From contig CALSCP010002154.1 of the NCBI GenBank assembly GCA_943704425.1, positions 1-64,000 on the forward strand: a stretch of DNA of 64,000 bases. The letters run 5' to 3'. The notes under the pieces are model-generated. The model was not told the DNA's origin and made no database searches. It worked only from the letters and a program-made list of their open reading frames with translations. Position numbers and translations under genes: made by a program. Origin of the DNA: Ministeria vibrans ATCC 50519. Its lineage: Eukaryota > Protista > Filasterea. Below are positions 1,895 through 22,727 of this stretch, piece by piece. Position 1 is the stretch's first letter. The number at the start of each line of letters is the position of its first letter.

Positions 1895-4800
1895 ATGACG
1901 AGGGTTCTTGTCGTCCTTGCCGCATTGCTACTCTGTGTGGCTGCCGATCAAGGTACGTATGGTCCTTTAGACGACGTAGAAGCGCAAGTGCGAGACCCCT
2001 AGCGGGAGTGTGGCCGAAAGAAGACCGAAATTCCAGGCGACATTCCGACAGAAATATTATTCATCTCGCCGCGTGCTTCGTTGGCGCGTGCCGTAGTCAT
2101 TGCGTGCTTTTCTACCTCATAAGAACAAGCCCCGCGTCCCACAGAAGCACAATCCTCATCTTTCCGTCGCGTACCAGATCCATTTTATATTATTCTGAGT
2201 TTTGATGTTGATTGCCAGCTCACACTCACGCTCTTCTCTCCTGCCCTCCTTGTCCAGGCGCGTCCCAAACACGACCCTTACCCGCATCCGTCTTTGAGAC
2301 TGCTCGCATTGCACTTCATGAACCGGAAGCGACTCGGAGACGCGATGAGGGAGTCAGCCACCAACTCAGCCTCACTGCTTTTGGAACGTACTAACTAAAA
2401 ACATTATAATAATAATTATGACTGTCGTATTATTATCAATGTTATTTTTATTAATCTTCCGCCTCACGCTCACGCCGTTTATGTGGTGTACATTGATCTT
2501 GCACTTTAGGCAAATAAACGTTGACTTTGTGCCCAACACCGACAGTTGGGAAGGGCAGGTCAAGGTTGCGGTCAGTGGCGGGGTTCCCAAATTTCTCGAT
2601 ATCTCAAGATATTTTAGAGGAACCAATCCAAGTAAAAGATTGTTTTTATATTGGAATTTTTTGATTATTTTTTTTTTCTTTTGCAGACATGCCATCACAT
2701 GGTGTGATTGACCCCGATACGGGAGTATTCGATGGTATCATTCACGACCTCGCTCACAACGAGGCGTACTACGTCGAGCCAATGTCACGCTACCATAACA
2801 TGGGCTCGGCCGTGCCCGCCGAGCACAACACCGTGGTTTTTCGCGCTTCTGACCTCGATCCTATTGACACAGCTCTTGAGTATGGCGCCGCTAACCCCCC
2901 GCAGCTTAATATTCCCACGGTACGGTCGGCGAGTCTGAAGTATGCTTCCTCATTAAATTTGTGTAGGCTGTGCTCACGGCAGCGCTCGAGGGTCAAAGAC
3001 ACCACACGCATACTTCACGCCGTTCATTGTCGCGCTCTCGTCGTGCGTTTCCCACTGACAAGTCGTGTTCTATTCTTCTTGTGGCCGACCACACCTTCAT
3101 TGCCGAGATTGGATCTAACCAGCTCGCCATCGACGAGATGGTCTTCCTTCTCAACGAGGTGGACGGCATCTACCGCACCACCGACTTCAACGGCATCACC
3201 GGAGTAGGCTTTCGACTCGCTGGCACGATTGAGCTCTGGCCCGATTCCAATCATCCTCACTACCCGTGGCCCACACCCGCGCCGGGCACGTCGAATAGCG
3301 TACGGGCTAAGCAAAAAAATAAAATTAATACTATCTTAATTACTGGTCCTCAGGTTCTTGACGAGTTCTCCCGGCACGGCTACGAAGACCGCATCAACGA
3401 CTACGACAATTTTTGCGTTGCCCACGCCTTTGTCCACCGTAATTTGCCTGGGAATACGGTCGGCCTCGCCTGGGTTGGCTCTCCCGCCTTCCTCCTCGGT
3501 GGCATCTGTGCCTTTTCCGTGAATTCCTTTTTTGAACAGAATGTCAACACAGGGTTCAGCGTAAGCCAGCGATGTTATTATAAGAGTATATTCTAAGTAT
3601 TAATCCTTGGGGTGAACCCACACTTATTGTAGAGTATGAACAGCAATGGAAACACCCTTTCACGCGCAAGCCTTACTGGAATTATGGCTCACGAGGTATC
3701 AACAAACGAGCACAAAATAATTAAGAGCAACAAAAATTGATAGAAGATGATTGTGAATGCCTTTTCATTTGTTTCAACAACAAAAACCAACACTAAAATA
3801 TTATGATAATAATAATAATTATTAATAAAAATAATAATAATAATAATTATTATTATTATTATATTTTGTTTATATTAATTTTTCTCTTCTTATTCTTTTT
3901 ATCTATAGATTGGTCACAATTTCGGTGCACAACACGATGAGACCTTTTCGTCCAATTCGACTTGTAACCCGGCTGTAGATGGCACGTTTATCATGGCCAG
4001 TTCGTTGCAGACGGGCAATGCAAACAATGTTCTGTTTTCGCCTTGCTCGCGCACCTCAATGCGTGCCAATCTCGATCATAAGGGCACCAACTTGCCTGCG
4101 TGCTTCACAACGGATCCACTTGCCGACGTGTGCACGTCGAGTCCTTGCAACAACGGCGGCACGTGCACAGCGGGACTTCTGTCCTTCTCGTGCGCCTGTC
4201 TTCCCGGCTTTACCGGTCCCACATGTGATACGGACGAGTGTATGTCGAACCCCTGTCAGAATGGCGGTACCTGCTACGAGGGAACAGCTTCGTACTTTTG
4301 TGGCTGCGCCTCGGGGTTTACTGGCACATCTTGCAGCGAGGTTGATGATTGCGCGTCAAACCCGTGCGCCAATGGCGGAACCTGCAACGACGGTGCGAGT
4401 TCGTACACCTGTACCTGTGCAAGCGGATTTAGCGGCACAAACTGTCTCAGTGCCGACGACGATTGCCTCTCTAACCCGTGTGCCAACGGGGGTACCTGCA
4501 ACGATGGTGCAGGTTTGTACACTTGTACCTGTGCAAGCGGGTTTACCGGCACTGCCTGTGGAGAGGCCAACGAGTGCGCCTCAAGTCCGTGCGTCAACGG
4601 CGGCATTTGTGCAGATGGTTCATCTTCATTCTCCTGTGATTGTACTGGCACTGGATTCAGTGGGACACAGTGTCAAACGGACATCGACGAGTGCGCGTCG
4701 AATCCATGCCAGAACGGTGGTGTGTGTACCAACGGCGCGAACGAGTTCACGTGCAACTGCGCGGNNNNNNNGGATTCAGTGGGACACAGTGTCAAACGGA

Positions 4801-7800
4801 CATCGACGAGTGCGCGTCGAATCCATGCCAGAACGGTGGTGTGTGTACCAACGGCGCGAACGAGTTCACGTGCAACTGCGCGGGCACTGGATTCAGTGGG
4901 ACACAGTGTCAAACGGACATCGACGAGTGTGCGTCGAATCCGTGCCAGAACGGCGGCACGTGTGGTGACGGCGTCAATGGTTACACCTGCACCTGTGCTG
5001 CTGGTTTCTTTGGCGATGAATGCCAGGCTGACGTGAACGAGTGTGCATCGAGCCCATGTGCAAACGGCGGTGTGTGCTCGGATACAGTGGGCGGTTACTC
5101 GTGCAACTGCGCGGGCACTGGATTCAGTGGGACACAGTGTCAAACGGACATCGACGAGTGCGCGTCGAATCCATGCCAGAACGGTGGTGTGTGTACCAAC
5201 GGCGCGAACGAGTTCACGTGCAACTGCGCGGGCACTGGATTCAGTGGGACACAGTGTCAAACGGACATCGACGAGTGCGCGTCGAACCCATGCCAGAACG
5301 GTGGTGCGTGTACCAACGGAGCAAACTTTTATTCGTGCGCCTGCACCGGTACTGGTTTTACCGACGACACCTGTTCCACGAACATTGATGAGTGCGCTTC
5401 TAGCCCGTGTGCTAATGGAGGCACTTGTTTTGATGGCGTTTCGTCATTCTCGTGTGTGTGCCCAGCTGGCCTCCTGGGTGATGCATGTCAGATCAATCCC
5501 GACGACTGTGCCAGCAACCCTTGTCTGAACTTGGCAACGTGCATTGATGGTTTTTCTTCCTACACCTGCATGTGTCCTCTCGGCTTGACCGGCGTCACGT
5601 GTGCTGACGATGTTGTTGAATGTGTGTCAGACCCTTGTACAAATGGCGCCACCTGCAATGAGGGCGTGAACAGTTTTGCATGTTCCTGCGCATCGGGCTT
5701 CACGGGCGTATTCTGCTCTGGAAACATTGACGAATGTGCTTCTTCACCCTGCCGCAATGGCGCCACCTGTATCGATGAAATTGCCAGTGTGACATGCACC
5801 TGCCCACCAGGCTTTGAAGGGGATCTCTGCGAAACCGACATCAACGAGTGTGCCACGATACCCTGCGAGAACGGTGGCACTTGCGATGATGCTGTCAATG
5901 ATTTTTCGTGCACATGCCGCGTTGGATTCAGCGGAAACACATGCGAGAACAACATTGACGAGTGTTCCTCGACGCCGTGTCTCAATGGCGGCACCTGTCA
6001 GGACGGCATAAATTCTTTTTCGTGTCAGTGCTCTCTTGGCTTTTCGGGATCCACATGTGCCACCAACAACGACGAGTGCGAACAGAGTCCTTGCTCGAAT
6101 GGTGCAACGTGTGTTGACGGTGTAAACTCGTTTGTGTGTGACTGCGCTCCAGGATTTATGGGAACGTTGTGCGACCAGGACGTGCTCGAGTGTGCCTCAG
6201 CACCCTGCTCCAATGGCGGCACCTGCACCGAGCAGCTCAACGGATACGCGTGCAACTGTATTATGGGGTTCGCGGGAGCACAGTGTGAAACCAACATTGA
6301 TGATTGCGCTGAAGCGGCCGGCTGTCTCAACGGCGGTACCTGTCTTGACGGCGTCACGTCGTTTGCTTGCGCCTGTGTTCTTGGCTACACCGGTACCACT
6401 TGCGAGGAAGACATCAACGAGTGTGTTTCTGCGCCGTGTGTAAACGGGGGAACATGCACCAATGGCGATGTAGGTTTCTTCAGCTGCGAATGTCCTTCCG
6501 GATTTGAGGGTGTCACCTGCAACCGTGACGTGAGCGAGTGCGACTCCGCTCCATGCCTCAATCAAGGCGTTTGCATCGAGGGAGTCAACTCGTACCTGTG
6601 CACCTGTCAGGCTGGATTTACTGGGGTGGAGTGCGGCGAGAACATTGACGAGTGTGAGCCGATGACGTGCCTCAACGGTGCGACTTGCCACGATGGTGTC
6701 GACAGCGTCTTCTGTGAATGTCCCGCAGGCTTTACTGGCACCACTTGTGGCCAGGACATTGACGAGTGCGCCTCGTCTCCGTGCGAAAACAGTGGCGTGT
6801 GTACAAATATTGTGGGCGCCTTCAACTGTGCGTGCACCGCCATGTTTAGCGGGCCGCAATGCGATGTGGACGTCGACGAGTGTTTGACAGCTCCCTGCGA
6901 AAATGGCGCTACTTGCATCAACTCCTTTGGCGGTTTCTCTTGTGCGTGCGCTCCGGGCTACACAGGAACTTTGTGCTCCCAGGAAATCAACGAGTGTGCC
7001 TCGTCTCCGTGTCAGAACCAAGGCACGTGTATCGACAACGTTGCTTCGTACACGTGTGTGTGCACCAACGACTTTGAAGGCACGCACTGCGAGAGTCTTA
7101 TTATACGCTATTGTGTCTCGTCACCGTGTGCACTTGGCGCCACTTGCAACGAACTCGCCAACGGCTTTTCGTGCACTTGTGCCGCAGGCTTTACCAGTGC
7201 CTTTTGCAACGCGGACATTGACGAGTGCGCAGCATCGACCGTGTGTGCCAACGGCGGCAACTGTAGCAATACTTTTGGTAGCTACTTTTGCCACTGTCCG
7301 GAGGGATTTACGAGCGTCGACTGCAGTGAGAACATCGACGATTGCACTGTGAGAGCCGGCCAGTGTCAAAATGGTGGGACGTGCGTCGACGGAATTGCTT
7401 CCGTTGTGTGTCTGTGCATTTCGGGGTTCACCGGGACCGACTGCCAGCAAGAGATAGATGAGTGTGCCTCTTCACCGTGCGCCAACGGTGGCGTGTGCAC
7501 AGATCGTTTTAATGGGTTCACCTGTGAGTGCACTGCAGGATTCACAGGCGCCACTTGTGTCGGCGATGTGGACGAGTGCGCTTCGACACCCTGCGCCAAT
7601 GGTGGCACTTGCGCCAACCAGCTGAACAGATTTGTCTGCACATGTGCTCCGGGATTCTTTGGACCCCGTTGTCTTGGAAATGTCAACGAATGTGGCTCGT
7701 CTCCGTGCGCCAATGGTGGCACATGTAGCGACGGCGACTTTGTATTTGTGTGCGACTGTGCGCATGGCTACACCGGAGTTCAGTGTGAGATAAACATTGA

Positions 7801-10800
7801 CGAGTGTGCCTCGTCGCCCTGCAGAGATTTTGCGCAATGTATCGATGGCATCAACCGCTTTCTGTGCAACTGTCCAGCCGATCGCACCGGTTTCACCTGC
7901 GACACGGCCTTTCTCGAGATCTCTTTCGAGAACCAGGGTGGCACCGTTGCGATTGGAGACGTATCACTCACCTTTGCACCGGGCAGTCTGCCCGTAGGCA
8001 CCGTGGTGACCGTAACTGTATACATTCAGCTAGTTGTGGCACCCGACGGAGGCACGATTGAAAGCTTGCAATACCTCGTGCAATTCTTGGCAGGTAGTGG
8101 CGTAGGTCGTCGTGACGCGGGATTGCCACTTCCATTCAAGGTACATTATATGCTTCCAGGTGATGCAACGCAATCACGGCTGTATGGCGTCTTTGATATC
8201 GATCTGGGAGTGTGGGTGCCACTTGAAGAGCTTGCTTCGTGCCCTGCCGGCTTCGTGTGTGGTCTCTCGGATCAGCCTTTGGTCGTCCTGGCCGTAATCA
8301 GCTTTGAAGAGTGCCACTCGTCGCCCTGTGCTAACGGCGGTACCTGCACCTCCGCTGGACACGTGTTTACGTGTGCATGTTCGCCTTTGTTTGCAGGCGA
8401 GGTGTGCACTATCGAGCTATCGCCGTGTGCGTCCAATCCATGCGGTCAGGGTTCGGGTGTGGCCGGGTGCCAGAGTTCACCCTCAGGTGACGCATACACA
8501 TGTGTGTGCCACGCTGGCTACACGGGCGCCACTTGCGACCAGTTTTCCGGTGGCTGCGTCAGCTCGCCCTGTCAGCTGGGCGCTGTGTGTCGTCTGATTG
8601 CACCCGATGCCCAAGAGTTTGTGTGCGATTGCCCGCCTGGCGTGACGGGCAGCATGTGTGAGACTGACGTTGACGACTGCTTTGTAAAGCGGTGTCGCAA
8701 CTTTGGCACGTGTGTCGACGAGACGAATGGTTTCCACTGTCTTTGCCTTGAGGGACTCACAGGTGAATTGTGCGACGCGGAGATTGACGAGTGTGCCTCG
8801 TCGCCGTGTCAGCACGGAGGTGTGTGTCACGACGAGTTCCGCGGCTACTCGTGCGATTGCAGCTACACCGGCTACTATGGCGAGCAGTGCGAGCGACTCA
8901 TAGACGAGTGTGCGTCGTACCCGTGCCGCAACGGTGCGAGTTGTATAGACCACGTCACGCATTTTAGCTGCCACTGTGCCGCCGGATTTTACGGCTATCT
9001 GTGCGAGGTGAATAACAACGAGTGTGGCTCATCGCCTTGCCGTAACGGCGCAACGTGCTACGACGATACCAATGGCTTCACGTGTTTCTGTGTGCCGGGC
9101 TTTACAGGCGCCAAGTGCGAAACGGACGTGGACGAGTGCGCTTCGAGCCCGTGTTACAATGAGGGCCAGTGCCACAATGGACACTATCCTAATACATTCG
9201 ACTGTACCTGTCCGTATGGCACTGCAGGCCTGCTGTGCGAGGTGAACTTCAACGATTGCCAGTCATCGCCTTGTCTTCATGGCACGTGTGTCGATGGCAT
9301 TGCGTCGTTTGTGTGCGCGTGTGAGCTAGGGTACGAGGGCCCGTTGTGCGAGGTGAACACCCTCGAGTGCCAGTCAAACCCCTGTGCAAATGATGGCATG
9401 TGCATTGACCTTGTCGCAGACTATGTGTGTTCGTGCGCCGCGGGCTTTACCGGTCGTGTGTGTGACATCGACATTGACGAGTGCTTATCGCATCCGTGCC
9501 ACAATGGCGGCTCGTGCCACGACGGTGTAAATTCGTACGGGTGTGCATGCCTGCCTGGCTTTGAGGGAGCACGCTGTGCGGACAACCGCAACGAGTGCGC
9601 TTCGAACCCCTGTTTGCATGGAGCAACGTGTCGCGACCACGTGAATGGCTATACTTGCTCGTGTGCAACCGGATTTGCGGGCAGTCGCTGTGAGGTGAAC
9701 CGCGACGAGTGTGCATCCAGTCCATGCGCTGGTGACTCGACTTGCGAGGACCGCCTCAACAGCTATGTGTGCCATTGTCCCGTGGGGTTTGCCGGCGCCC
9801 ACTGTCAAGTGGACATTAACGAGTGTGCATCGCGCCCCTGTCTCAACCAAGGTGCTTGTGTTGACGTCCAGGGCGGCTACCATTGTGTGTGTCGACCCGG
9901 CACGACGGGCCGTCAATGCGAAACGCGGCTTAACGAATGCGCCTCGAGTCCGTGCCAGTATGGTGGCGAGTGTTTCGATAGAGCGGACAAGTTTGAGTGT
10001 GTGTGTATGCCTGGCTATACGGGAGAACTCTGCGAGGTGGACGTTGACGAGTGTGCTTCGTCGCCGTGTGCGAATGGCGAGTGTGCCGATCTAGTTGATG
10101 GATTTAGGTGCACGTGCGAGCCGGGGTGGATCGGATCGTTGTGCAGCAGCGAAACGGACAAGTGTGCGTCATCACCGTGTGCTGCAGGGCAAGGCACTTG
10201 TGACAATGTTGCTGGTGGGTTTGTGTGCGTGTGCAATGCGGGCTGGACAGGGGCGCGTTGCGACTACGATGTTGACGAGTGCAAATGGTACCCGTGCCAC
10301 AACGGTGGCACCTGTACCAACTTGGTCAATGACTTCTCGTGTGTTTGCCCGCCCGCGTGGACTGGTAAGACGTGTTCCGACGACGTCGACGAATGTGCGG
10401 GGGCTGCATGCAAGAATGGTGCGACATGTGTTGACCTGGCTGCGTCCTCGGGTGGCGGCTACTTTTGTACGTGTGCGCTGGGATACGCCGGTGGTCTATG
10501 CCAACACAATGTGAACGAATGCGAGTCTAGTCCGTGCGAGCACGGTGTGTGCGTTGACCACACCGGCGGCTACGAATGCGTCTGCGAGGCAGGCTACCTG
10601 GGTGTACGTTGTGAAGTGGAGGCGAACGAGTGCGCCTCTCAGCCGTGTCTGCATGGTGGTGTGTGCATTGATCTCGTGAACAAGTTTGCGTGCAGCTGTG
10701 CCTTTGGCTATGCGGGCTCCGTGTGCGAGACTAATGTGAATGAGTGTTTGTCGTCGCCGTGCGGCGCCCATGGCGACTGCTACGATGGCGTTGGCTCGTT

Positions 10801-12706
10801 TGTCTGTGATTGTGCTGCAGGTTTTACCGGTCGCCAGTGCGACGTGAACGTCGACGAATGCTCATCGCAGCCGTGCATTTATGGCAATTGCCTGGATGGT
10901 GTGAACACATTCACGTGTGCGTGTCAACCGGGATTTACGGGGGTGCTGTGTCATACGGACATTAATGAGTGCGCGGAAGGTTCCTGTGGCGCCAATGCGC
11001 TGTGCATTGACCTGGTCAATGGATTTTTGTGTGCCTGTTACCACGGCTACACGGGCACTTTGTGTCAGTTTGAGGTCGACGAGTGTGCGTCGCAACCGTG
11101 CCAGAATGGCGGTACATGCCGCGATTCCACTGGTGGCTTCACCTGCGACTGTGTCCAGGGTTTTGCAGATCCACATTGCAGTGTGAACATCGACGAGTGT
11201 GTGTCGCATCCGTGCAAACATGGCGGCACTTGCGTGGACCATGTGGATGGATTCACATGTAAATGCACGCCGGGGCACACTGGATCAACGTGTACCGTAG
11301 ACATTGACGAGTGTGCCTCGTCCCCCTGTGCGGGGCACGCCACGTGTGTTAACCTGCTGGGCACGTTTCATTGCATTTGTCCCGCCCACTATTACGGCAC
11401 AACCTGCCATGCGCCTGTTGACTACTGTTCGTCGTTGCCTTGTCACGCGGCGGGCACCGCTGGCTGTGACAGCACCATGGCGGGCTTTGTGTGTCGCTGC
11501 CGTGCAGGCTGGACTGGCACACTGTGTTCTTTGGACATTGACGAGTGTGCGACGACACCGTGCGCACATGGCGGCACGTGTATGAACATGGTTGGAGGAT
11601 TTCTGTGCGGCTGTGTACTTGGCTACGAAGGACCGACGTGTGGCACGAACACGGACGATTGTCTGACGTCGTACTGCAAACATGGCGGCACCTGCGTGGA
11701 TGGTTTCAATGCGTATGCCTGCCTGTGTCCCGCCGATTACACCGGTCCCGACTGCTCGGAGCCTGTTGACTCGTGTGTCTCGGCGCCTTGCGTCTTTGGC
11801 GTGTGTGTGGACGGTGAACATTCGTTTGCGTGTCTTTGTGCGCCCGGTTTTACCGGAACGCTGTGCACCGACGACATCAACGAATGCGCGTCGTACCCGT
11901 GCGAACACGGCGGAGTCTGTGCCAATCTAGTCAATGGGTTTGCGTGCACGTGTGCACCGGGCTTCTCTGGCACTCGATGCGAAGAGAATCTCGACGAGTG
12001 TGCACCGATGCCATGCGACCATGGAGCGACCTGTGTGGACGGCATTGACAGTGTGACGTGCCATTGTGCGACCGGCTATGCGGGTGTGCGCTGCGAACAT
12101 AATGTGAACGAGTGTGCATCGGCACCGTGTGCCTATGGCGCCACGTGTGTCGACGGTGTGTCCTCGTACGTATGCCAGTGCCTCACTGGCTTTACCGGGC
12201 CTCACTGTCATCAACATGTGTACGCGGGTACGCAGACAAACACAGGCCAAGCAAGTGTGGGAGCGTCGTCGGCGCTCATTGCGGGCATTGTTGTCGCCGT
12301 TCTGGTGGTACTTGCCGTAGTGGTCTTGGTGTTTGTCGTACAGCGTAAACATCGACAGCACAAGATCGTGCCGGAGCAGACATTGACGTCGTCGTCGTTT
12401 GCACGAAGTTCCTTCACAAGCGACGCATACGCAAGCGACGTCAACGCAGCGTGGCTCGCCACGGGTGTGTCGCGTGGACTGCGCGAGTCGGACGACTCAG
12501 TTGACTTTACGAGCCAGGAAGACCTGTCGCCCACCTCGTCGGTGTTGGGCCACTGGAGCCGCACGAGTATGGATACCGCAAACAGTGGCGTGGACAGACG
12601 ACGCTCGTCGGCAGCATCGACGCTCTCAGGCGAAGTGCGGCAGGAGGCGAGTCTGCCGGGCGCGGTTGGGGCACGCTGGGAGTATGACGACGAGAGTACT
12701 CTTTGA
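1895..12706 (+). CDS. ADAM10/17-like metalloprotease fused to ~67 EGF repeats, a central ZU5-like domain, a TM helix and a Ser-rich tail (~3,300 aa). About 8 exons; last exon 3909-12706.
   Basis: Signal peptide MTRVLVVLAALLLCVAA. Prodomain GVFDGII..YYVEPMSRY..HNTVVFRASDL. Furin-type RSRR/AF. CSILLVADHTF, GLAWVGSP..GGIC. Zinc motif AHE|IGHNFGAQHD across intron 3696-3908, Met-turn GTFIMAS. Ca-binding EGF repeats DIDECASxPCxNGGxC. TM ALIAGIVVAVLVVLAVVVLVFVV followed by QRKHR. The apparent frameshift coincides with the 7-N gap at 4765-4771. Confidence 0.88.
4640..5320 (+). repeat. Near-identical 117-bp (39-aa) EGF-coding tandem repeat, several copies, with an assembly gap inside
   Basis: The unit ggcactggattcagtgggacacagtgtcaaacggacatcgacgagtgcgcgtcgaatccatgccagaacggtggt... 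recurs at about 4648, 4772, 4883, 5114 and 5231. Confidence 0.9.
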
Positions 12707-12857
12707 GCGAGCGAGAGAGATCGAGAGGGAGAAAAAGGTGATGCGAGAGGTCGAGTGACGTAATAGTATTGAATACGTGTGTTATAAGCAAAAGACATAT
12801 TTTCTTTTTTGGAGATAGATCACAAAGGTAGATAAAGGAAAGAGAAAAAGGGAGGGC

Positions 12858-14080
12858 TCATCCACGCTTGGGGTACTCGCCACGGGGCGGAGGGGAGTAG
12901 CCTTGGCGCTTGGGGTCTTGACCGCCTGTGTGGTAGTCACGGGTGCTTGTTGCCTAGATTGGGGGACGCAAGAATGGGGTGAGTAAGGAAGGCTGGGGGA
13001 GGGGTGTGAGTCATGTAGTACTTGGTCGGGAAAGGTTGGGTCGGCGAAACGGAGGTTCTTGATGACATACTCTGCTGCTTCGTGACAGCTGGTTTTGCCA
13101 GAGAGTAGTTCGGTCAGGGTCTTTTCAAGAGGGACGAAGAGACCCTGGTGGAATCCCAGAGACCAATCGTAGCTCTGGACGGCATTGTATGTCGCAGGGA
13201 AAATTGGGTGCTATACCAAGATCATAGATAGATAAGGGCAGAGATCGAGTGAGGGTGAGAGTGAGTAAGTGCGTGCGTGTGAGTGAGTGTGTGTGAGTGC
13301 GAGTGTGCGTGTATGTGTGTGCGAGATTGAGGTGAGATGAGTTTGTACGTCGTCGTTGTGAAAACATGATCGGCTGCAATGCATCAGTGCAATGCCGTCT
13401 TGCTTGGCATTGTCGCAGTTGTTTCCATAGCGACACTAAAAGTGAGAGAAAAAAAGGACACGGGATTTGTAACGGTGTCAGTGAAAGAAAGAGAAAAAAA
13501 CAAACTTGGTTTGTTACTTGATCGGCTCTGTAGTTCCATCGACAAGGAATGATTTTCACTACATCCGGATGGATACCCAAAATGGTATTGATGAGATCCT
13601 ACACAAACAGAGAGAGAGAGAGGAGGAAGGGAGAAAGAAACAAAGTGTGTGAGAGAGAGGAGGGAAAAAGAAACAAAGCGACAGTGTGTGTGTGTGTGTG
13701 AGTGAATGAGAGTGAGTGGGTGAAAGGGAGTAAGTGTATGAGTCAAGTCAGTCAGTAAGTGAGTCAGAAAGCGTGAATCAATAAGGTCAGTGACAGTTTG
13801 TAGTAAGCGAATGAGTCAGTTGATGAGTGCACTGACCTGGTCTCCCCAAGTGAGGGCACCTCGGTACATGTCGTAGTAGTGTTTGACTTTGCCAACCCAG
13901 TCGAACGAGCGCATTCGCTTCAGGTCCATAAACATCACTGCGGAATTGATACCCAAAGTGCCAAAGAACCTAGAAACAAATTTGCCATAGAGAGAGTGTG
14001 TGTAAGGGTATTCTCTCTCTCTATCACTTTGTTTCTCTCTCTCTCTCTATCGCTTTGTTTCTCTCTCTCTCTCTATCGCT

Positions 14081-14117
<37 letters not shown>

Positions 14118-15241
14118 GCGTACGGGTGTCGNNNNNNNNNNNNNNNNNNNNNNNNNNNNNNNNNNNNNNNNNNNNNNNNNNNNNNNNNNNNNNNNNNNNN
14201 NNNNNNNNNNNNNNNNNNNNNNNNNNNNNNNNNNNNNNNNNNNNNNNNNNNNNNNNNNNNNNNNNNNNNNNNNNNNNNNNNNNNNNNNNNNNNNNNNNNN
14301 NNNNNNNNNNNNNNNNNNNNNNNNNNNNNNNNNNNNNNNNNNNNNNNNNNNNNNNNNNNNNNNNNNNNNNNNNNNNNNNNNNNNNNNNNNNNNNNNNNNN
14401 NNNNNNNNNNNNNNNNNNNNNNNNNNNNNNNNNNNNNNNNNNNNNNNNNNNNNNNNNNNNNNNNNNNNNNNNNNNNNNNNNNNNNNNNNNNNNNNNNNNN
14501 NNNNNNNNNNNNNNNNNNNNNNNNNNNNNNNNNNNNNNNNNNNNNNNNNNNNNNNNNNNNNNNNNNNNNNNNNNNNNNNNNNNNNNNNNNNNNNNNNNNN
14601 NNNNNNNNNNNNNNNNNNNNNNNNNNNNNNNNNNNNNNNNNNNNNNNNNNNNNNNNNNNNNNNNNNNNNNNNNNNNNNNNNNNNNNNNNNNNNNNNNNNN
14701 NNNNNNNNNNNNNNNNNNNNNNNNNNNNNNNNNNNNNNNNNNNNNNNNNNNNNNNNNNNNNNNNNNNNNNNNNNNNNNNNNNNNNNNNNNNNNNNNNNNN
14801 NNNNNNNNNNNNNNNNNNNNNNNNNNNNNNNNNNNNNNNNNNNNNNNNNNNNNNNNNNNNNNNNNNNNNNNNNNNNNNNNNNNNNNNNNNNNNNNNNNNN
14901 NNNNNNNNNNNNNNNNNNNNNNNNNNNNNNNNNNNNNNNNNNNNNNNNNNNNNNNNNNNNNNNNNNNNNNNNNNNNNNNNNNNNNNNNNAAAAAAACGAC
15001 ACTCAATGCAAAAGACTGACGCTTGAAGAAGCGGCAGAGGGGGGGGCGGGGAGGGGAAGGAACGGCAGGTCGCAGAGATCGGAGCTCAAGGGGGACGCTG
15101 TGGAGCGAATGATACCGGGTGTGCGGGGCGTGAGGTGACAGCAAAGAAGACGGTCAGCAGAATGGCGCCCATCACCATCGTCGACATGCGCATGCCGCAG
15201 CACCGCCCTGACGTCGCAAAGCGCGACATTCCTCGCCTCAT
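12858..15241 (-). CDS. GXYLT: Glucoside xylosyltransferase GXYLT1/2-like (GT8); middle hidden in the N-gap 14132-14989
   Basis: Hand-spliced minus-strand exons: FFGTLGINSAVMFMDLKRMRSFDW..YRGALTWGDQ | DLINTILGIHPDVVKIIPCRWNYRADQ | CRYGNNCDNAKQDGIALMHCSRSCFHNDD | HPIFPATYNAVQSYDW. These are collinear with recalled GXYLT motifs (GxNSGVMLM, ITWGDQDLLN, PCQWNYRPDHC, YGSNC). A probable type II anchor exon (MRRGMSRF..MVMGAILLTVFFAV) starts at 15241; its linkage across the gap is inferred. Confidence 0.82.
14132..14989. other. Scaffold gap (N run, ~860 nt)
   Basis: Run of n. Confidence 0.99.
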
Positions 15242-15398
15242 GCCTGCTCACTGCTATCCTGGACAAACTAATAAACAGAATTGTGATTTGTGAGTTCAAA
15301 GGTTTACTATTGTCTTACTAGATGACTTGAAATTTGAATAATTTTTTTCCTAGATTTATTTGGTCTTTCCCTCTTGTCATACCCCTTTGCCATTGGAC

Positions 15399-18037
15399 AT
15401 GCGACTGATCGCGGCCACTAGCCTTGTCCTTTTGCTTTTGTTTTGCCTTGAGGTTCGTTTATGTCTTTCTTTCTACTCTCCTGCGTCGCGCTCTGGCCTT
15501 TCTCTCTTTCCGTTGCGTTCTTTATCACTTCAACTCGTATACGATTGTGTCTCTATGCTCTCGGGTGTTTTTTTTTTTTTTTTTTTGTCGATTTTTGAGT
15601 TATGATTTTTTTTTTTTGATTTTCGCTTCTCAAAAATAAAACTCTTTGGCCTTCTCACGCGTGCTCTCTGTCTCTCGGCTAACGCACGATCATGTAGAGC
15701 CGGGCCAACGAGAGCGAAGACGCCGGCGCGGCATCTATTGGAGCAGAGAAGGTCGATGGAAACGGTGAGGTGTCCACGGCGGATTTGTCCACGTCGGATT
15801 CCGTCGCCATAGTCGACAGCGACGCGCCACCGCCCGACGAGGTGCCCCAAGTGGACATTGGAGATGACTTGGTGACGCTGATGCGGCGACAGCTTAACGA
15901 ATCTTCGCCAGAGTACGACTTGGCGTTGGCGTACGCAACCGCTCAAGAGTGCGTTGTCCGCCACGATCGTCCCGAGTGCGCCATACGCGTCGCCATGGGC
16001 CATTTCTACGGCGATGCGCCCGACGTCATTGCTCACAATGTAAGCGAGTCCTACCGACTCTTTACCGAGCTCTTGACACGACCGCTCAACGACGAGGCAA
16101 ACCCCCAGGCGCTCACCAAGGCCTTCCACACCATTGTGAATCGTTACTTGGCGCTACACCACGCTCTGGGTCTTGGAGTACGTCGTGATCAGGCACGTGC
16201 TTTGCTGCATAGCATGTCCAGTGCACGCGGCGGCAACCTCCTCTCGCGCATGTTTCTGGGCTTTCGCTTCTACCTAGGTCTTGGCCTGCCCATGGGTTGC
16301 GAGAATGCCGTACACTACTATCGCGACGTTGCCGACGCGGTCGTGCCGCAGCTAATGCGCTCGGGCGATCCTCTGATTGAGCGGGTACGCCTGTCGTCGG
16401 AGGCGGACAAGGCGGCGCAGGCGAACAGCATGTCGGAAGACGACATTGTTGAGTACTATCGGCATGCGGCGTCGCGCGACGATCGCGACGCCCAGAATCT
16501 GCTGGGCGAGCTGCACCTGCGCGGCCGTCATGGCTTGCGTCAGGACTATGCTTTGGCTCGCGACTACTTTGAGCGGGCGGCACGAGGCGGCCATGTGGCA
16601 GCTCAGGCACAGCTGGGCACGCTCTATCTCGAGGGTCTTGGTGTGGAGCAAAGCAACGAGACGGCCCTGCGGATGTTCCGCAAGGCAGCTGACAAGGGCA
16701 ATGCGGTGGCACTCAACGGTCTGGCTGTGATGTATTTGACGGGACGCGGCGTGGACGTCGATGCTAAGGAGGCGTTGCGGCTCTTCCAGGTGGCAGCGGA
16801 CGGACCCCAGGGACTGCCCGAGGCTCAGTTCAACCTTGCCAACATGTACTTTGACGGTCGAGCCGTTGCCCGACGCGACTACAAGCGTGCCATTCACTAC
16901 TACACGCTGGCGGGCCAACAGGGCCACACACTGTCACTCAAACAACTGGGTGATATGCACCACAAAGGCATTGGGATGCACAAGAACTGCAATCTGGCCG
17001 TGTCTCTCTACAAGAACGTGGCCGAGCGTGGTCGCTACTCGCGCACCCTAGAGCTTGCACACACTGCTTTTAAGGCGGCCAACTACGCATCGGCCTTTGT
17101 ACGCTATGCCGAGGCCTCCGAGCTGGGCTTCGAGGTGGCGCAGGCCAATGCGGCCTACATTCTGACCGAGTACGGCAGTGCCGTTGAGTGGCTTTTTGCC
17201 ACTGAGAAGGAACGGGCAGAAGACGTCAACGAGCAGACAGCGCCTGCTCCCTCAATCGCACAACAGAGCGCGACCACCACAACTGAGACGGAAACGACAG
17301 CGGAAACGACAACGGAGACTGAGACGAGTGAGGCACCGATTGCAGGTGGCCCAGCCGAGGAGGCACACCCATCCGAGTCAGAGTCACCACAGTTGTTGCC
17401 TCGCAACGAGAAAGAAGACACGTCCTTGTCGCCTCCTCCCACCACTGCTGCACCGACGTACGCGAGCGTTGCCTTGTTTTACTACAAGCGGGCAGCGATG
17501 CAAGGCAATGCAGCGGCGCGCGTCAAGATTGGCGACTACTACTACTACTACGGTGCAGACTACACGACGGCCGCCAGCCACTACCGCACGGCGTCGGATC
17601 AGCTGCAGAATGCACAGGCCATGTGGAACCTGGGCTACATGCACGAGCACGGGCTGGGTTTGCCTCGCGACCTGTTCCTTGCCAAGCGTTACTACGACAT
17701 GAGCGCACGCACCTCTCAAGAGGCCTACCTGCCCGCCTCCCTTGCCCTTCTCAGCGTTTATGCGAAGTTTGCCTGGCAGAGTTTTGAGCAAGGTCGCTTG
17801 GCGACGGACATTATGGCGCTGTTGGCACCACCACCCACCAAGGGCACATCAGCGGAAGCAGCTGCAGGTGGTGCGGAGTCGGATGCGCAAACGTCACCCT
17901 ATGCCGCGCAAACCGAGTTCCTCTTGGAGCTTTTCTTGCAGCACGAGGACGTCATTCTGACTGTCCTTACTGCTCTCTTTGTGTTTTTACTTCTTATTCG
18001 CATGGGTCGAGTTCAGCTTCGGCAAAGGCAGCCTTGA
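15399..18037 (+). CDS. SEL1L: SEL1L/Hrd3 ERAD adaptor (Sel1-like repeats); signal-peptide exon 15399-15452, intron 15453-15697
   Basis: Signal MRLIAATSLVLLLLFCLE joins the 755-aa ORF in frame. SLR repeats, CENAVHYYRDVAD, CNLAVSLYKNVAERG, ELGFEVAQANAAYIL, ARVKIGDYYYYG, NAQAMWNLGYMHEHGLGLPRDLFLAKRYYD, C-terminal TM. Confidence 0.9.
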
Positions 18038-18254: not shown

Positions 18255-21200
18255 ATGAACTTTACAGTGCAAATCACGCCAGACATATCGCAATCGACCC
18301 AGCTGCGCGTTGCGCCCGATTCCTATGTAACCTTTGAACTGGGAATGACTGCGGGCTATGCGGTGCGCCTCGAGTGGACGTATCCGCCGGCAGAGGCGAC
18401 GTTTGATCGAAGCAAGTTTCACCCTTGCCCGTTTGGTGTACGGACGCTCGTCGACCAGCCGGGGCCCTACGCCTTCCGCGTGATCACCTCGGAGAATGGC
18501 CGTGCGCTGGTGAGTGGCGTCGTCGTTGTGGAGCCGCGGCTGCCGCACGGTCTGCACAGCGATCAGATCTGCGCGCAGACAGTCCTCACCAAGTGCCTCG
18601 GCCCCATCGACGAGTGGCGAGACCGTCTGCTCGTGGCCGTCGACGCCGGTTACAACGCCATCCACTTTACGCCGGTGCAAACGCTCGGTCCGAGCGACTC
18701 GGCCTATTCACTTGCATCGCAAGACGAACTGCCCGACGATCAGTATCCGACGTGTGCCGATCAACGCGAGCGCTGGCATCAGCTTGAGACGGTGCTGGGG
18801 TCTCTCCAGAGCGAGTTTAACCTGTTGCTCATTCAAGATTGCGTGTGGAACCACACGGCACCCGAGACTACCTGGGTACGCGACCACCCCGAAGCGACAT
18901 ACAACCTGCGTGACTGTCCTTGGCTGCAGAGCGCCTACGACGTGGACGCTGCCATCAGCCACTTCTCTTCGTCGCTCGCTGCTCGAGGTGTCATCATCGA
19001 CTCGGAACATTCGATGGAACAGGCTTTGCGCGAACTCCATGATACCCGTCTGTGTGCACTCAACCTGTGGGAGTACGATATGGTCGACAACGCAGAACTC
19101 GAACGTGCTCTCACGGAGATCGCCAACGCCTCATCCTCGTCCCCCTCTTCTTCTTCTTCTTCCTCCTCCTCCTCCTCAACAACAACAACAACAGCAACAA
19201 ACATCAGCACAAATTCAACATCGTCGTCTCTGTTGGACTTGCCTTTGATCGAGAACGTCAAGCATGGCCGAGGCACAGCACAGGTCAACTGCAAGGCGGC
19301 ACTTGCGCTCGGTCTGGATGCGACTCGTCTGCGCGCGCGTATAGACGAGCACAACCGCGACGCACACGAGCGTGCACAGCATCTTTGTACGCAAATCATC
19401 GACAATGTACGTCATCGCGTACGCTACGAGCGCTGCGAAGAGGGCGGGCCCCGCTACGGAGCGGTGACGGCCTCGCATCCTCTGACCACCCCGTACTTTG
19501 AGGTGTTGGATCAGACGCGTCCCGAACTCATCATGGCTCACAATGGATGGATGTGGAATGCGGATCCGCGTGACGATTTTGCCTCCGAGACGTCGTCGGC
19601 GTACCTCACGCGCGACGTCATTGCCTGGTCAGACTGTGTCAAGTTGCGCTATGGCACGTGTCCAGCCGACAACCCGTGGCTGTGGCAGCACATGCGAGAG
19701 TACACGGAGCGCACGGCCCGACTCTTTGACGGAATCCGTGTTGACAATGCACACAGTACGCCGCTTGCAGTGGCCTCGTACATGCTTGACGCGGCCCGTG
19801 CTGTCTCGCACGGTCGTGTCTACACCATTGCTGAGCTGTTCACCGGCTCGGAAGAGCTCGACAACGTCTATGCGAATCAACTGGGCCTGAGTGCGCTCAT
19901 TCGTGAGGCCATGGCGGCACACTCACCGGCCGAGCTAGGTCGTGTTGCCTTTCGTCATGGAGGACGTGAGCCGGTGGGTCAAATGCCGCGTCGAGGACAG
20001 CTTGTTGGCGCACGTCAGTTGCCACCGGCGCTGTTTATGGACGCGACGCACGACAATCCGTTACCGGTGCAGCGACGTTCGCTCGCCGACATGCTTGCGA
20101 CAGCGGCGCTGGTGAGTGGCACACGTACAGCGATTGGCAGCACACGCGGCTACGATGAACTGGTCACGACCAATGCTGATGTTGTCACCGAGCGGAGACG
20201 TTATACGGGTCGCAGGAGCAGTGAGCAGGATGTGGGCATGTCAAGAGTGCGCCGTGAACTCAACCAGCTGCATGTACACTTGGAGGCGAATCACTACTGC
20301 GAACAGTTTGTTGATCAGTGTGCCGAGGACACGTGTGCGATTGTGCGCACCTGTCCCGCCGAGCACAGTTCCTATGTATTCATTGTGCGCTCCGCATTTG
20401 ATGGGCATCATGCGAGTGAGCCACTTCGCGATGGTGTCTCGCTATTTTTTGAACGTTCAACTGTCGCTGAGATCGTGCTGGAGGCGCGCCTCACCTCGAC
20501 GAACGCACAACCAGCCGTGAGTGCAAGTGGCGACTTCATTCGAGGGTTGCCCAGCGATGCGTATTCACTGTGGAGCCAGACACGCTGTGCGCCCGAAGAC
20601 AGCCGACTGGTGTATGTAGAGCAAGCGGCGACGCACTCGGACAAGGGTGTAGTGGGCACACGCGTGCATTTGAGTGGACGACTTTTGCCGGGCGATGTGT
20701 GTGTGCTACGGGTAGAAGGGGACGCGGAGGTGAAGCGAACACTGGTGCGTCTGCACAAGGCACCGTTTCCCAGCGAGACCCTCTGTTCCGACGTGATTCA
20801 GCACTTGACCGAGCTGGACTTGAGCGATGCGCTGTACCGTTGCGAGAGCGAAGAGCTCGACTGTGGCTCCACAGGCTACAGCATTCCCGGCTATGGGGCT
20901 CTCGTGTTGCACGGCTTTGCTCACCTTGACTGGATTCTGCGCACACAGGTCCGCAGTGATCTGGGACACGCGGTGTGTCAGCATCTCCGTGACGGCGACT
21001 GGCTCATGGAGTGGTGTGCGCGGCGTCTGTGCGAGACAGAAATGGCAAGCGAGGCACTGCGCGACCTTGGCGGCGCCCTACTGGACCATTTGTCGCTCAT
21101 CCGTTTGCTCCCACGACCGCTTGTGCCGGCCTTTGTGGCCGAGTGCATTTACGGGGTGACGGTTGCGCTGGAGCGTCGTGCCGTGGCACTGATGCCACGC

Positions 21201-22727
21201 GTTGCAAAGTTGAGCAAGGGAGTAGACGACGCGCGCTTTGTGCGTCAGTTGGCGCTGACCAGCTATCAAATGTATGGACGCATTCCATCGGGGCGCATGT
21301 TGGACGTGAGCAGCGAACGCCACGAGGCGTACGGTCACGACGACGACGTCGACGACGATGGTGGCTCGCTTGCGGCGGGTCTGCCTCACTTTGCTACGGG
21401 CTATATGCGTTGTTGGGGCCGCGACACGTTTCTCAGCGTGCCCGGTCTGTTTCTGGCGACTGGTCGATTTGATGTGGCGCGTCGTTTGCTGCTGCGTTTT
21501 GCTTCGGTTTGTCGCCATGGACTCATTCCCAATCTGTTGGCGGGTGGACGACGACCGCGCTACAACGCGCGCGACGCCACCTGGTTCTTCCTTGAATGTC
21601 TGCAGCGCTACTGTCGCTTGGCGCCCGAACACCTGGCGATTCTCGAGGCGCCCGTACAACGACGCTTTCCGTTTGACTCGCAGACGGAACACGAGGCACA
21701 CTATGGCACGGAGGGCGTTGCGACCGATGTGTGGTGGACGCTGCGTGATGTGGTGCAACACATTTTGCAGGCACACACGCGTGGCATTGCGTTTCGTGAG
21801 TGGAACGCCGGACGTGCGATTGATGCGCACATGCATGACGAAGGGTTTGATGTGAGTGCGCGAGTGGACCTGTGCACAGGCTTTGTGCATGGTGGCAACC
21901 AACACAACTGCGGTACGTGGATGGACAAGATGGGTGAGTCGGAGCGTGCGGGCACGCGCGGGGTGCCTGCGACGCCACGCGATGGGGCTGCTATTGAGAT
22001 TGTGGGGTTGTGCAAGAGTGCTGTGCGATGGATGTCGCAGCTGGTGGCCGAGGGTATGTGGCCCTGGCAAGGGGTGCAGGTGATGAAGCAGGAGGGAGAG
22101 AGTTTGTGGACGTATGCGGAGTGGGATACGATCTTGCAGCAGTCGTTTGACGAGTGGTTCTACGTGCCTCGGACAAGCGACGAGGACGCGGCGCACCACT
22201 GTCGCAGCGACCTGGTGCATCGTCGAGGCGTGTACCGTGACACTGTGGGCGCGACGCACACCTGGTGCGACTATCAGTTGCGACCAAACCAGTGCATTGC
22301 CATGGTGGTGGCACCCGAGTTGTTTGCACGTGAGCGTGTGTGTGGCGCACTGACGATTGTGGCAAGGTTACTTCACAGCGAGCAAGGGATGCGTACGCTT
22401 GATCCCGACGACTGGAACTACCGACCACACTACGACAATGCACGCGACGACGACGATCGTGCCACCGCGCGTGGCTTCAACTACCACCAGGGGCCCGAGT
22501 GGCTCTGGCCGACTGGGTTCTTCCTGCGTGCGCTTGCGATGCACGGACACGAGCGTGCCGATGAGCTATTGGCAGCCACGCGACGAGACATGGGACGGGC
22601 CTTGGACGCCAGTCCTTGGCAAGGGCTGGTGGAGCTCACGAATGAGAATGGGTCGTTTTGTCGTGACTCGTGTGCCACACAGGCTTGGAGCATGTCGTGT
22701 ATGCTTGAAGCTGTCTTGAAGCAGTAG
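18255..22727 (+). CDS. AGL: Glycogen debranching enzyme (4-alpha-glucanotransferase/amylo-1,6-glucosidase), apparently intronless
   Basis: QTVLTKCLGP, GYNAIHFTPVQ, WSDCVKLRYG, GIRVDNAHSTP, AELFTGSEELD, DATHDN, LAAGLPHF..MRCWGRDTF, NCGTWMDKMGES, DYQLRPN, GFNYHQGPEW, QAWS. Confidence 0.96.
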   Translation: MNFTVQITPDISQSTQLRVAPDSYVTFELGMTAGYAVRLEWTYPPAEATFDRSKFHPCPFGVRTLVDQPGPYAFRVITSENGRALVSGVVVVEPRLPHGLHSDQICAQTVLTKCLGPIDEWRDRLLVAVDAGYNAIHFTPVQTLGPSDSAYSLASQDELPDDQYPTCADQRERWHQLETVLGSLQSEFNLLLIQDCVWNHTAPETTWVRDHPEATYNLRDCPWLQSAYDVDAAISHFSSSLAARGVIIDSEHSMEQALRELHDTRLCALNLWEYDMVDNAELERALTEIANASSSSPSSSSSSSSSSSTTTTTATNISTNSTSSSLLDLPLIENVKHGRGTAQVNCKAALALGLDATRLRARIDEHNRDAHERAQHLCTQIIDNVRHRVRYERCEEGGPRYGAVTASHPLTTPYFEVLDQTRPELIMAHNGWMWNADPRDDFASETSSAYLTRDVIAWSDCVKLRYGTCPADNPWLWQHMREYTERTARLFDGIRVDNAHSTPLAVASYMLDAARAVSHGRVYTIAELFTGSEELDNVYANQLGLSALIREAMAAHSPAELGRVAFRHGGREPVGQMPRRGQLVGARQLPPALFMDATHDNPLPVQRRSLADMLATAALVSGTRTAIGSTRGYDELVTTNADVVTERRRYTGRRSSEQDVGMSRVRRELNQLHVHLEANHYCEQFVDQCAEDTCAIVRTCPAEHSSYVFIVRSAFDGHHASEPLRDGVSLFFERSTVAEIVLEARLTSTNAQPAVSASGDFIRGLPSDAYSLWSQTRCAPEDSRLVYVEQAATHSDKGVVGTRVHLSGRLLPGDVCVLRVEGDAEVKRTLVRLHKAPFPSETLCSDVIQHLTELDLSDALYRCESEELDCGSTGYSIPGYGALVLHGFAHLDWILRTQVRSDLGHAVCQHLRDGDWLMEWCARRLCETEMASEALRDLGGALLDHLSLIRLLPRPLVPAFVAECIYGVTVALERRAVALMPRVAKLSKGVDDARFVRQLALTSYQMYGRIPSGRMLDVSSERHEAYGHDDDVDDDGGSLAAGLPHFATGYMRCWGRDTFLSVPGLFLATGRFDVARRLLLRFASVCRHGLIPNLLAGGRRPRYNARDATWFFLECLQRYCRLAPEHLAILEAPVQRRFPFDSQTEHEAHYGTEGVATDVWWTLRDVVQHILQAHTRGIAFREWNAGRAIDAHMHDEGFDVSARVDLCTGFVHGGNQHNCGTWMDKMGESERAGTRGVPATPRDGAAIEIVGLCKSAVRWMSQLVAEGMWPWQGVQVMKQEGESLWTYAEWDTILQQSFDEWFYVPRTSDEDAAHHCRSDLVHRRGVYRDTVGATHTWCDYQLRPNQCIAMVVAPELFARERVCGALTIVARLLHSEQGMRTLDPDDWNYRPHYDNARDDDDRATARGFNYHQGPEWLWPTGFFLRALAMHGHERADELLAATRRDMGRALDASPWQGLVELTNENGSFCRDSCATQAWSMSCMLEAVLKQ

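Follow-up and report, generated by a model that had tools for sequence, protein, structure and literature searches.

A GXYLT-like glycosyltransferase gene and its EGF-repeat neighbour in the filasterean Ministeria vibrans

When a gene for a sugar-transferring enzyme and a gene for a giant protein studded with that enzyme's presumed target sites lie tail to tail, are they a functional pair or chance neighbours? The question is raised by a stretch of 64,000 nucleotides from the filasterean protist Ministeria vibrans ATCC 50519 (assembly GCA_943704425.1, contig CALSCP010002154.1, positions 1 to 64,000 of the forward strand), referred to here as the window, in which a minus-strand gene resembling GXYLT1/2 ends next to a plus-strand gene for a protein with more than 60 EGF repeats. 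In animals, from which GXYLT1/2 and their Drosophila counterpart Shams are known, these enzymes modulate the trafficking of Notch and Crumbs. The initial annotation of the window proposed that the two genes form an enzyme-substrate pair, indicating Notch-type EGF glycosylation outside animals on a protein other than Notch. The analysis described below leads us to a different balance: the gene probably encodes an intact, intron-rich, type II membrane glycosyltransferase of family GT8 that is an orthologue or very close relative of animal GXYLT1/2 (Shams), and its adjacency to the EGF gene is most likely coincidental.

Family and structure of the enzyme gene

At every catalytic exon, the sequences closest to the gene are those of animal GXYLT1/2 (CAZy GT8). 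Exons were searched singly, and exon 7 was scored against 1.84 billion representative proteins, yielding 63 matches at E<=1e-3. Thirty of these 63 were looked up, and the 14 named relatives among them are, without exception, animal GXYLT1/2 proteins, labelled either 'glucoside xylosyltransferase 1/2' or 'UDP-D-xylose:beta-D-glucoside alpha-1,3-D-xylosyltransferase', from hosts as varied as a priapulid, a sea anemone, sea urchins, amphioxus, a feather star, sea slugs, an acorn worm, a mite, stick insects, a planthopper and a nematode. A fifteenth named match, carrying a ribosomal protein S16 label, was discarded as a spurious low-complexity artefact. Exons 3-10 are collinear on GXYLT proteins and abut one another with no missing residues, the match of exon 10 being weak; on the 440-aa protein P0020, for example, exons 3, 4 and 5 align to residues 127-179, 186-239 and 245-261, respectively. 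In a fragment-aware alignment, six of the eight exons have median identities to GXYLTs of 32-45%; exons 5 and 10 are lower, at 27% and 19%, and the best per-exon values range over 27-55%. Of 30 near-invariant GXYLT columns, 25 are retained, with the DxD and the conserved cysteine and histidine motifs among them. The succession of motifs is likewise that of the animal enzymes (DxD, G-x-NS-G/A-VM, WGDQD-L/I-N, PC-x-WNYR-x-D-x-C-x-YG-x-NC, H-G/C-x-R), as are the length (464 versus ~440 aa), the predicted type II anchor, and the co-occurrence with POGLUT1 and with EGF repeats bearing C-x-S-x-P-C sites, whereas the protist host, an identity of 32-55% over the catalytic exons, a divergent C-terminal tail and a few changed near-invariant residues, such as HG to HC, set the gene apart. 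The enzyme that had been pieced together from small minus-strand exons among microsatellite introns is thus well supported as GXYLT-like, given the 14 concordant named relatives and the collinearity of exons 3-10.

Two other families needed to be told apart from GXYLT. LARGE uses UDP-xylose and carries a second, GT49 domain, while XXYLT1 acts in the same pathway as GXYLT, adding the second xylose, and has the same GT8 fold. Although the N-terminal GT8 xylosyltransferase domain of LARGE1/2 is the nearest to GXYLT among solved structures, the exons described here are 0-37% identical to the GT8 domain of the LARGE-like gene of the same genome (on contig C1535), and 7-35% identical to a generic GT8, and no GT49 domain lies downstream of the GXYLT-like gene. 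A sequence search of the PDB, used solely as a negative discriminator, was made with exons 3, 4 and 7, the longest three of the catalytic domain, and recovered neither LARGE1 nor XXYLT1 at E<=10; as a control, a full animal-type GXYLT matches the LARGE1 and XXYLT1 structures at 68 and 31 bits, respectively. An identity as LARGE was therefore rejected on three counts (no GT49 domain, low identity, no LARGE1 match from exons 3, 4 and 7), and an identity as XXYLT1 was rejected because the same three exons have no detectable similarity to XXYLT1 structures. Exon 10, which lies past the Pfam GT8 core, returned from the ESM Atlas nothing besides meaningless short bacterial clusters.

The N-terminal half of the catalytic domain is hidden from the window by a gap at 14132-14989, which sits inside the enzyme gene. 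A search of the same assembly with a full-length relative led to an unplaced contig of 1,484 nt, C211 (locus L026), with which the gap can be closed in silico. Over 45 nt (21 unique bases plus a GA run), the 3' end of C211 agrees exactly with the minus strand of the window, counted downward from 14131; past this stretch the two differ solely in the length of the GA repeat. The 5' end of C211 starts in a T-run resembling the opposite gap edge. Five exons (2-6) lie on C211 in the right order and frame. Exons 3-6 match GXYLT proteins in order, and the DxD motif stands in 'LVYLDSDTLL' of exon 4; exon 2, for which no protein match was obtained, is taken to encode the stem region. The two records are also tied together independently, because in a related organism one exon of 94 residues (P0001, from the fragmented assembly GCA_025491055.1) covers the counterparts of exons 5 and 6 on C211 and of exon 7 in the window, with identities of 72, 93 and 84%, respectively. 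The true gap would then measure ~1.4 kb, against 858 nt in the record. One might suspect a broken or mis-assembled gene, with a disruption inside the gap or with C211 derived from another copy, given that the gap falls within the gene and that C211 and the window have GA repeats of unequal length. Exon 7 is, however, present in a single copy in the assembly, the 45-nt overlap is exact, one exon of a relative bridges both pieces, and all exons are open and in phase, which renders such a defect very improbable. Placing C211 therefore offers a practical route to closing the gap in the GXYLT-like gene.

The complete model comprises 11 exons and 1,395 nt, or 464 codons plus a stop, with GT-AG borders at all ten introns and phases that close (Table 1). 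Five exons with canonical AG/GT borders lie between 13969 and 12858, and microsatellites such as (GT)n, (GA)n and related repeats occupy the introns. The borders of exons 2 and 3 on C211 were set by hand. Frame, phase and topology are the grounds on which exon 1 was assigned to the gene, its downstream intron entering the gap; its hydrophobic stretch was recognised by eye, and its link to the remaining exons crosses the gap edge. Were exon 10 read through unspliced, the stop would fall near 12783.

Partner enzymes and candidate substrates

POGLUT1 and POFUT1, which the initial annotation had left to be found, are both represented in the genome by similar genes. A multi-exon gene on contig C2085 is POGLUT1-like: over 126 residues it matches human POGLUT1 (5L0R, E=6.7e-22) and Drosophila Rumi, at E ~1e-21. 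C2228 carries a second GT90 gene that is not POGLUT1-like. C498 holds a POFUT1-like gene, for which the match to POFUT1 structures has E=5e-26, and a gene for UDP-glucose dehydrogenase (UGDH) is present. A second, divergent GXYLT-like gene lies on C578 (30435-30920, minus strand, and nearby; locus L025), with a 168-residue exon bearing a DxD motif and more exons downstream, and the LARGE-like gene on C1535 (locus L028, 262-2629, plus strand) combines GT8 and GT49 domains. The other GT8 loci that were read resemble, by eye, glycogenin, GAUT/LgtC-type enzymes, UGGT or LARGE.

Potential substrates abound. The Pfam EGF model gives 6,638 first-look candidates in the 29.7-Mb assembly, the best 150 of which fall on ~82 contigs, with open frames that reach 6,478 residues in length (C837, C1415, C2236, C138 and C2817 are example contigs of this large repertoire). 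There are also many tiny contigs made of EGF units only, probably unassembled repeats. In five other giant EGF genes, C-x-S-x-[PA]-C occurs in 55 of 80, 16 of 46, 23 of 25, 59 of 62 and 60 of 62 modules, and in a sixth sampled frame in 3 of 11, so that the share across the sampled frames spans 27-97%.

From these components, and by analogy with animals, a pathway may be sketched whose activity and acceptor are predicted from sequence. The POGLUT1-like enzyme would attach O-glucose, in the endoplasmic reticulum (ER), to the serine within the C1-x-S-x-P/A-C2 motif of EGF modules that have folded, and the GXYLT-like enzyme, as a UDP-xylose:beta-glucoside alpha-1,3-xylosyltransferase, would add xylose to that EGF O-glucose; the likely substrates would be the giant surface proteins with EGF repeats, of which the organism has a very large set. 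The parallel to the O-glucosylation of Notch and Crumbs EGF repeats by POGLUT1, GXYLT and XXYLT1 lies in the presence of a POGLUT1-like gene, a GXYLT-like gene and abundant consensus EGFs in one genome, whereas the likely substrates differ, being giant EGF-rod proteins. Glycosylation of EGF repeats with O-glucose and xylose in this non-animal is accordingly plausible, and to that extent the proposal of a Notch-type modification acting outside animals on a non-Notch protein is credible, enzymes and consensus sites coexisting here; the special gene pair to which that proposal was attached is not supported.

A protein with part of the architecture of Notch was met elsewhere in the genome. On C2097 (locus L046, 2917-6819, minus strand), a frame of 1,301 residues encodes a signal peptide, three Pfam LNR modules, a juxtamembrane region, a transmembrane helix and ankyrin repeats, that is, a Notch core without EGF repeats, which is a further difference from the animal system. 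Additional LNR matches occur on C2583, C386 and C985.

The neighbours of the GXYLT-like gene

The window is eukaryotic in character, with ~55% G+C, short microsatellite-rich introns and intergenic spacers of ~150-250 nt. The EGF protein encoded next to the enzyme gene, which crosses the membrane once, has 61 EGF modules in its main open frame, interrupted by a non-EGF insert near residues 1090-1225, and three more encoded by upstream exons, hence at least 64 in all. In the main frame, C1-x-S-x-P-C2 is found in 47 of the 61 modules, C2-x4-[ST]-C3 in 34, C-x-x-G-G-[ST]-C in 17 and a calcium-binding prefix in 48; with the upstream modules, the O-glucose motif is carried by 50 of 64 EGFs, so the earlier count of about 50 in about 67 was essentially right. 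Pfam detects EGF-type families only in this protein, with no LNR and no ANK domain, which agrees with its description as something other than Notch.

The enzyme and EGF genes are convergent, and the 151 nt measured between their stops match the spacing of about 150 bp reported initially. That proximity, together with the 50 O-glucose consensus sites of the neighbour, is what speaks for a selected enzyme-substrate pair, in which the GXYLT-like gene would be kept beside the EGF giant through co-regulation or through overlapping 3' ends that couple expression. Against such a pair, EGF genes are extremely abundant in this genome, and the neighbour is not special as a substrate because other giant EGF genes are equally rich in the motif. 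Short spacers are ordinary in so compact a genome, and a convergent orientation provides no common promoter. Nor was an EGF gene seen near other pathway genes, as far as 10 kb beside each of four of them (POGLUT1-like, POFUT1-like, the second GXYLT-like and the LARGE-like gene) show, their flanks being covered incompletely.

Among other organisms, the only GXYLT exon from a close relative (P0001) lies on a contig of 497 nt, and the remaining GXYLT-bearing contigs, of animal or unknown origin, have unrelated neighbours, none of them an EGF gene. A metagenome scan with exon 10 found no relatives, and one with exon 4 yielded four contigs of low GC content, probably from animals, with no EGF neighbour. 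An environmental eukaryotic scaffold from the ENA metagenomes (L032, 17 kb, 51% G+C) carries three tandem multi-exon GXYLT-like genes at 8342-16723, and no EGF gene adjoins them.

How often an enzyme gene would acquire an EGF neighbour by chance can be approximated from our estimates of ~50-350 EGF-array genes among ~10,000 genes, which give ~1-7% per gene, a rough figure in that both gene counts are estimated. With four or five pathway genes at ~1-7% each, one such adjacency is unremarkable. An adjacency beyond chance was thus not found in this genome, nor an EGF neighbour of GXYLT genes on the contigs read from other organisms, and we consider a selected enzyme-substrate pair quite unlikely. 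The tail-to-tail arrangement is most likely coincidental, from which we infer that the two genes lack a functional linkage, and the EGF neighbour is likely one ordinary member of the organism's giant EGF set.

At its other end, the GXYLT-like gene faces an orthologue of SEL1L, an adaptor of ER-associated degradation (ERAD). The SEL1L-like protein matches human SEL1L (8KET) at E=2.6e-110, yeast Hrd3 also being matched, and the putative start codons of the two genes are divergent and ~160 nt apart, making a bidirectional promoter possible. The meaningful neighbour might therefore be SEL1L rather than the EGF gene, a common promoter joining the two in an ER quality-control module for EGF-rich cargo. 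Such a module would fit mammals, where GXYLT1-dependent xylosylation takes place in the ER and aids the quality control and secretion of Crumbs2 and Notch, giving GXYLT1 a role in the trafficking of EGF proteins (PMC13683433), and the SEL1L orthologue itself is clear. It has, however, been observed once only, in a compact genome in which most genes lie equally close to their neighbours, and SEL1L acts in ERAD generally, so we regard the module as unlikely. A wider proposal would have an EGF O-glucose/xylose code that predates animals and Notch and serves to control, in the ER, the quality of giant EGF-rod surface proteins numbering in the hundreds, with the GXYLT-like gene kept in a neighbourhood where it shares the SEL1L promoter and abuts a substrate gene; taken as a whole, it is doubtful.

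Beyond SEL1L, 218 nt after the end of its frame, begins a complete gene for a glycogen debranching enzyme, an intron-free single frame of 1,490 residues. It shows 31-41% identity among the matches listed (animal, fungal and dictyostelid), and in a quick tree it forms a long branch beside insect sequences with weak support.

Table 1. Features of the GXYLT-like gene and its surroundings (window coordinates unless C211 is named)
Feature	Position	Strand	Remarks
EGF gene, upstream exons	4131..4577	+	three further EGFs, all with C-x-S-x-P-C
EGF gene, main open frame	4640..12706	+	61 EGFs, transmembrane helix, tail of ~130 aa; TGA 12704-12706
GXYLT-like gene, exon 11	12858..12953	-	low-complexity tail; TGA stop 12860-12858
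GXYLT-like gene, exon 10	13022..13210	-	C-terminal; weak matches to GXYLT C-termini (P0017 385-425)
GXYLT-like gene, exon 9	13349..13435	-	CRYGNNC..LMHCSRSCFHNDD; conserved His retained
GXYLT-like gene, exon 8	13518..13598	-	DLIN..PCRWNYRADQ; on GXYLT proteins its match (e.g. P0011 244-269) follows that of exon 7 directly
GXYLT-like gene, exon 7	13837..13969	-	FFGTLGINSAVMFMDL..TWGDQ, core GT8 motif; 44 residues
GXYLT-like gene, exon 6, final 8 bases and GT donor	14124..14131	-	low gap edge; identical to C211 1366-1373
GXYLT-like gene, exons 2-6	hidden in gap 14132..14989	-	on C211: 189-433, 582-750, 833-988, 1183-1248, 1327-1373
GXYLT-like gene, exon 1	15241-15116	-	start codon, short basic N-terminus, hydrophobic stretch (predicted type II signal anchor), GT donor
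SEL1L orthologue	15400..18037	+	head-to-head with the GXYLT-like gene
Glycogen debranching enzyme gene	18255-22727	+	complete

Weighing the assignment and its meaning

The roughness of the chance estimate is one of several points that weigh against reading the gene as an intact orthologue or very close relative of GXYLT1/2 with an EGF neighbour by coincidence. The 11-exon model is predicted from genomic sequence alone, and across the high gap edge exon 1 is linked to C211 by a poly-T run only. Scored singly on Pfam GT8 (PF01501), exon 4 is the one exon to match, at 16.3 bits against a cut-off of 24.3, where a full animal-type GXYLT reaches 47.7 bits, and a tree with the exons as separate rows did not resolve and had long branches. 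The pathway, too, may differ from that of animals, in that Fringe (PF02434) has no match in the genome and no XXYLT1 was recognised among the GT8 loci read in a non-exhaustive search. Because these two were not found, the glycan perhaps ends at Xyl-Glc, or it may differ from the animal one.

The lack of a recognised XXYLT1 also bears on whether an enzyme that is GXYLT-like by sequence might use another acceptor or donor, such as a different glucoside or a matriglycan-like polymer, with EGF O-glucose not its target. Identity to animal GXYLTs of 42-55% at best in the catalytic exons leaves room for a shift of this kind, as does the divergent second paralogue on C578. Against it, most of the near-invariant GXYLT residues are retained, the same genome encodes a POGLUT1-like enzyme and thousands of consensus sites, and a separate gene covers the LARGE-type function, so that another acceptor appears improbable, and the EGF O-glucose of the organism's giant surface proteins is the acceptor that we favour.

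By this account the enzyme is an additional member of a known family, and its reading as one half of a gene pair is not supported. Its interest lies in the company it keeps across the genome. A holozoan-wide distribution of POFUT1 had been described by 2009 (PMC2770060); among the literature hits listed, none joined GXYLT with unicellular relatives of animals, which is no proof of novelty. In Ministeria vibrans, a GXYLT orthologue, a POGLUT1-like gene, a POFUT1-like gene and thousands of consensus EGF sites occur together in a protist, and their coexistence suggests that the glycosylation of EGF repeats with O-glucose and xylose predates Notch signalling and arose as a general aid to the folding and quality control of surface proteins rich in EGF repeats.

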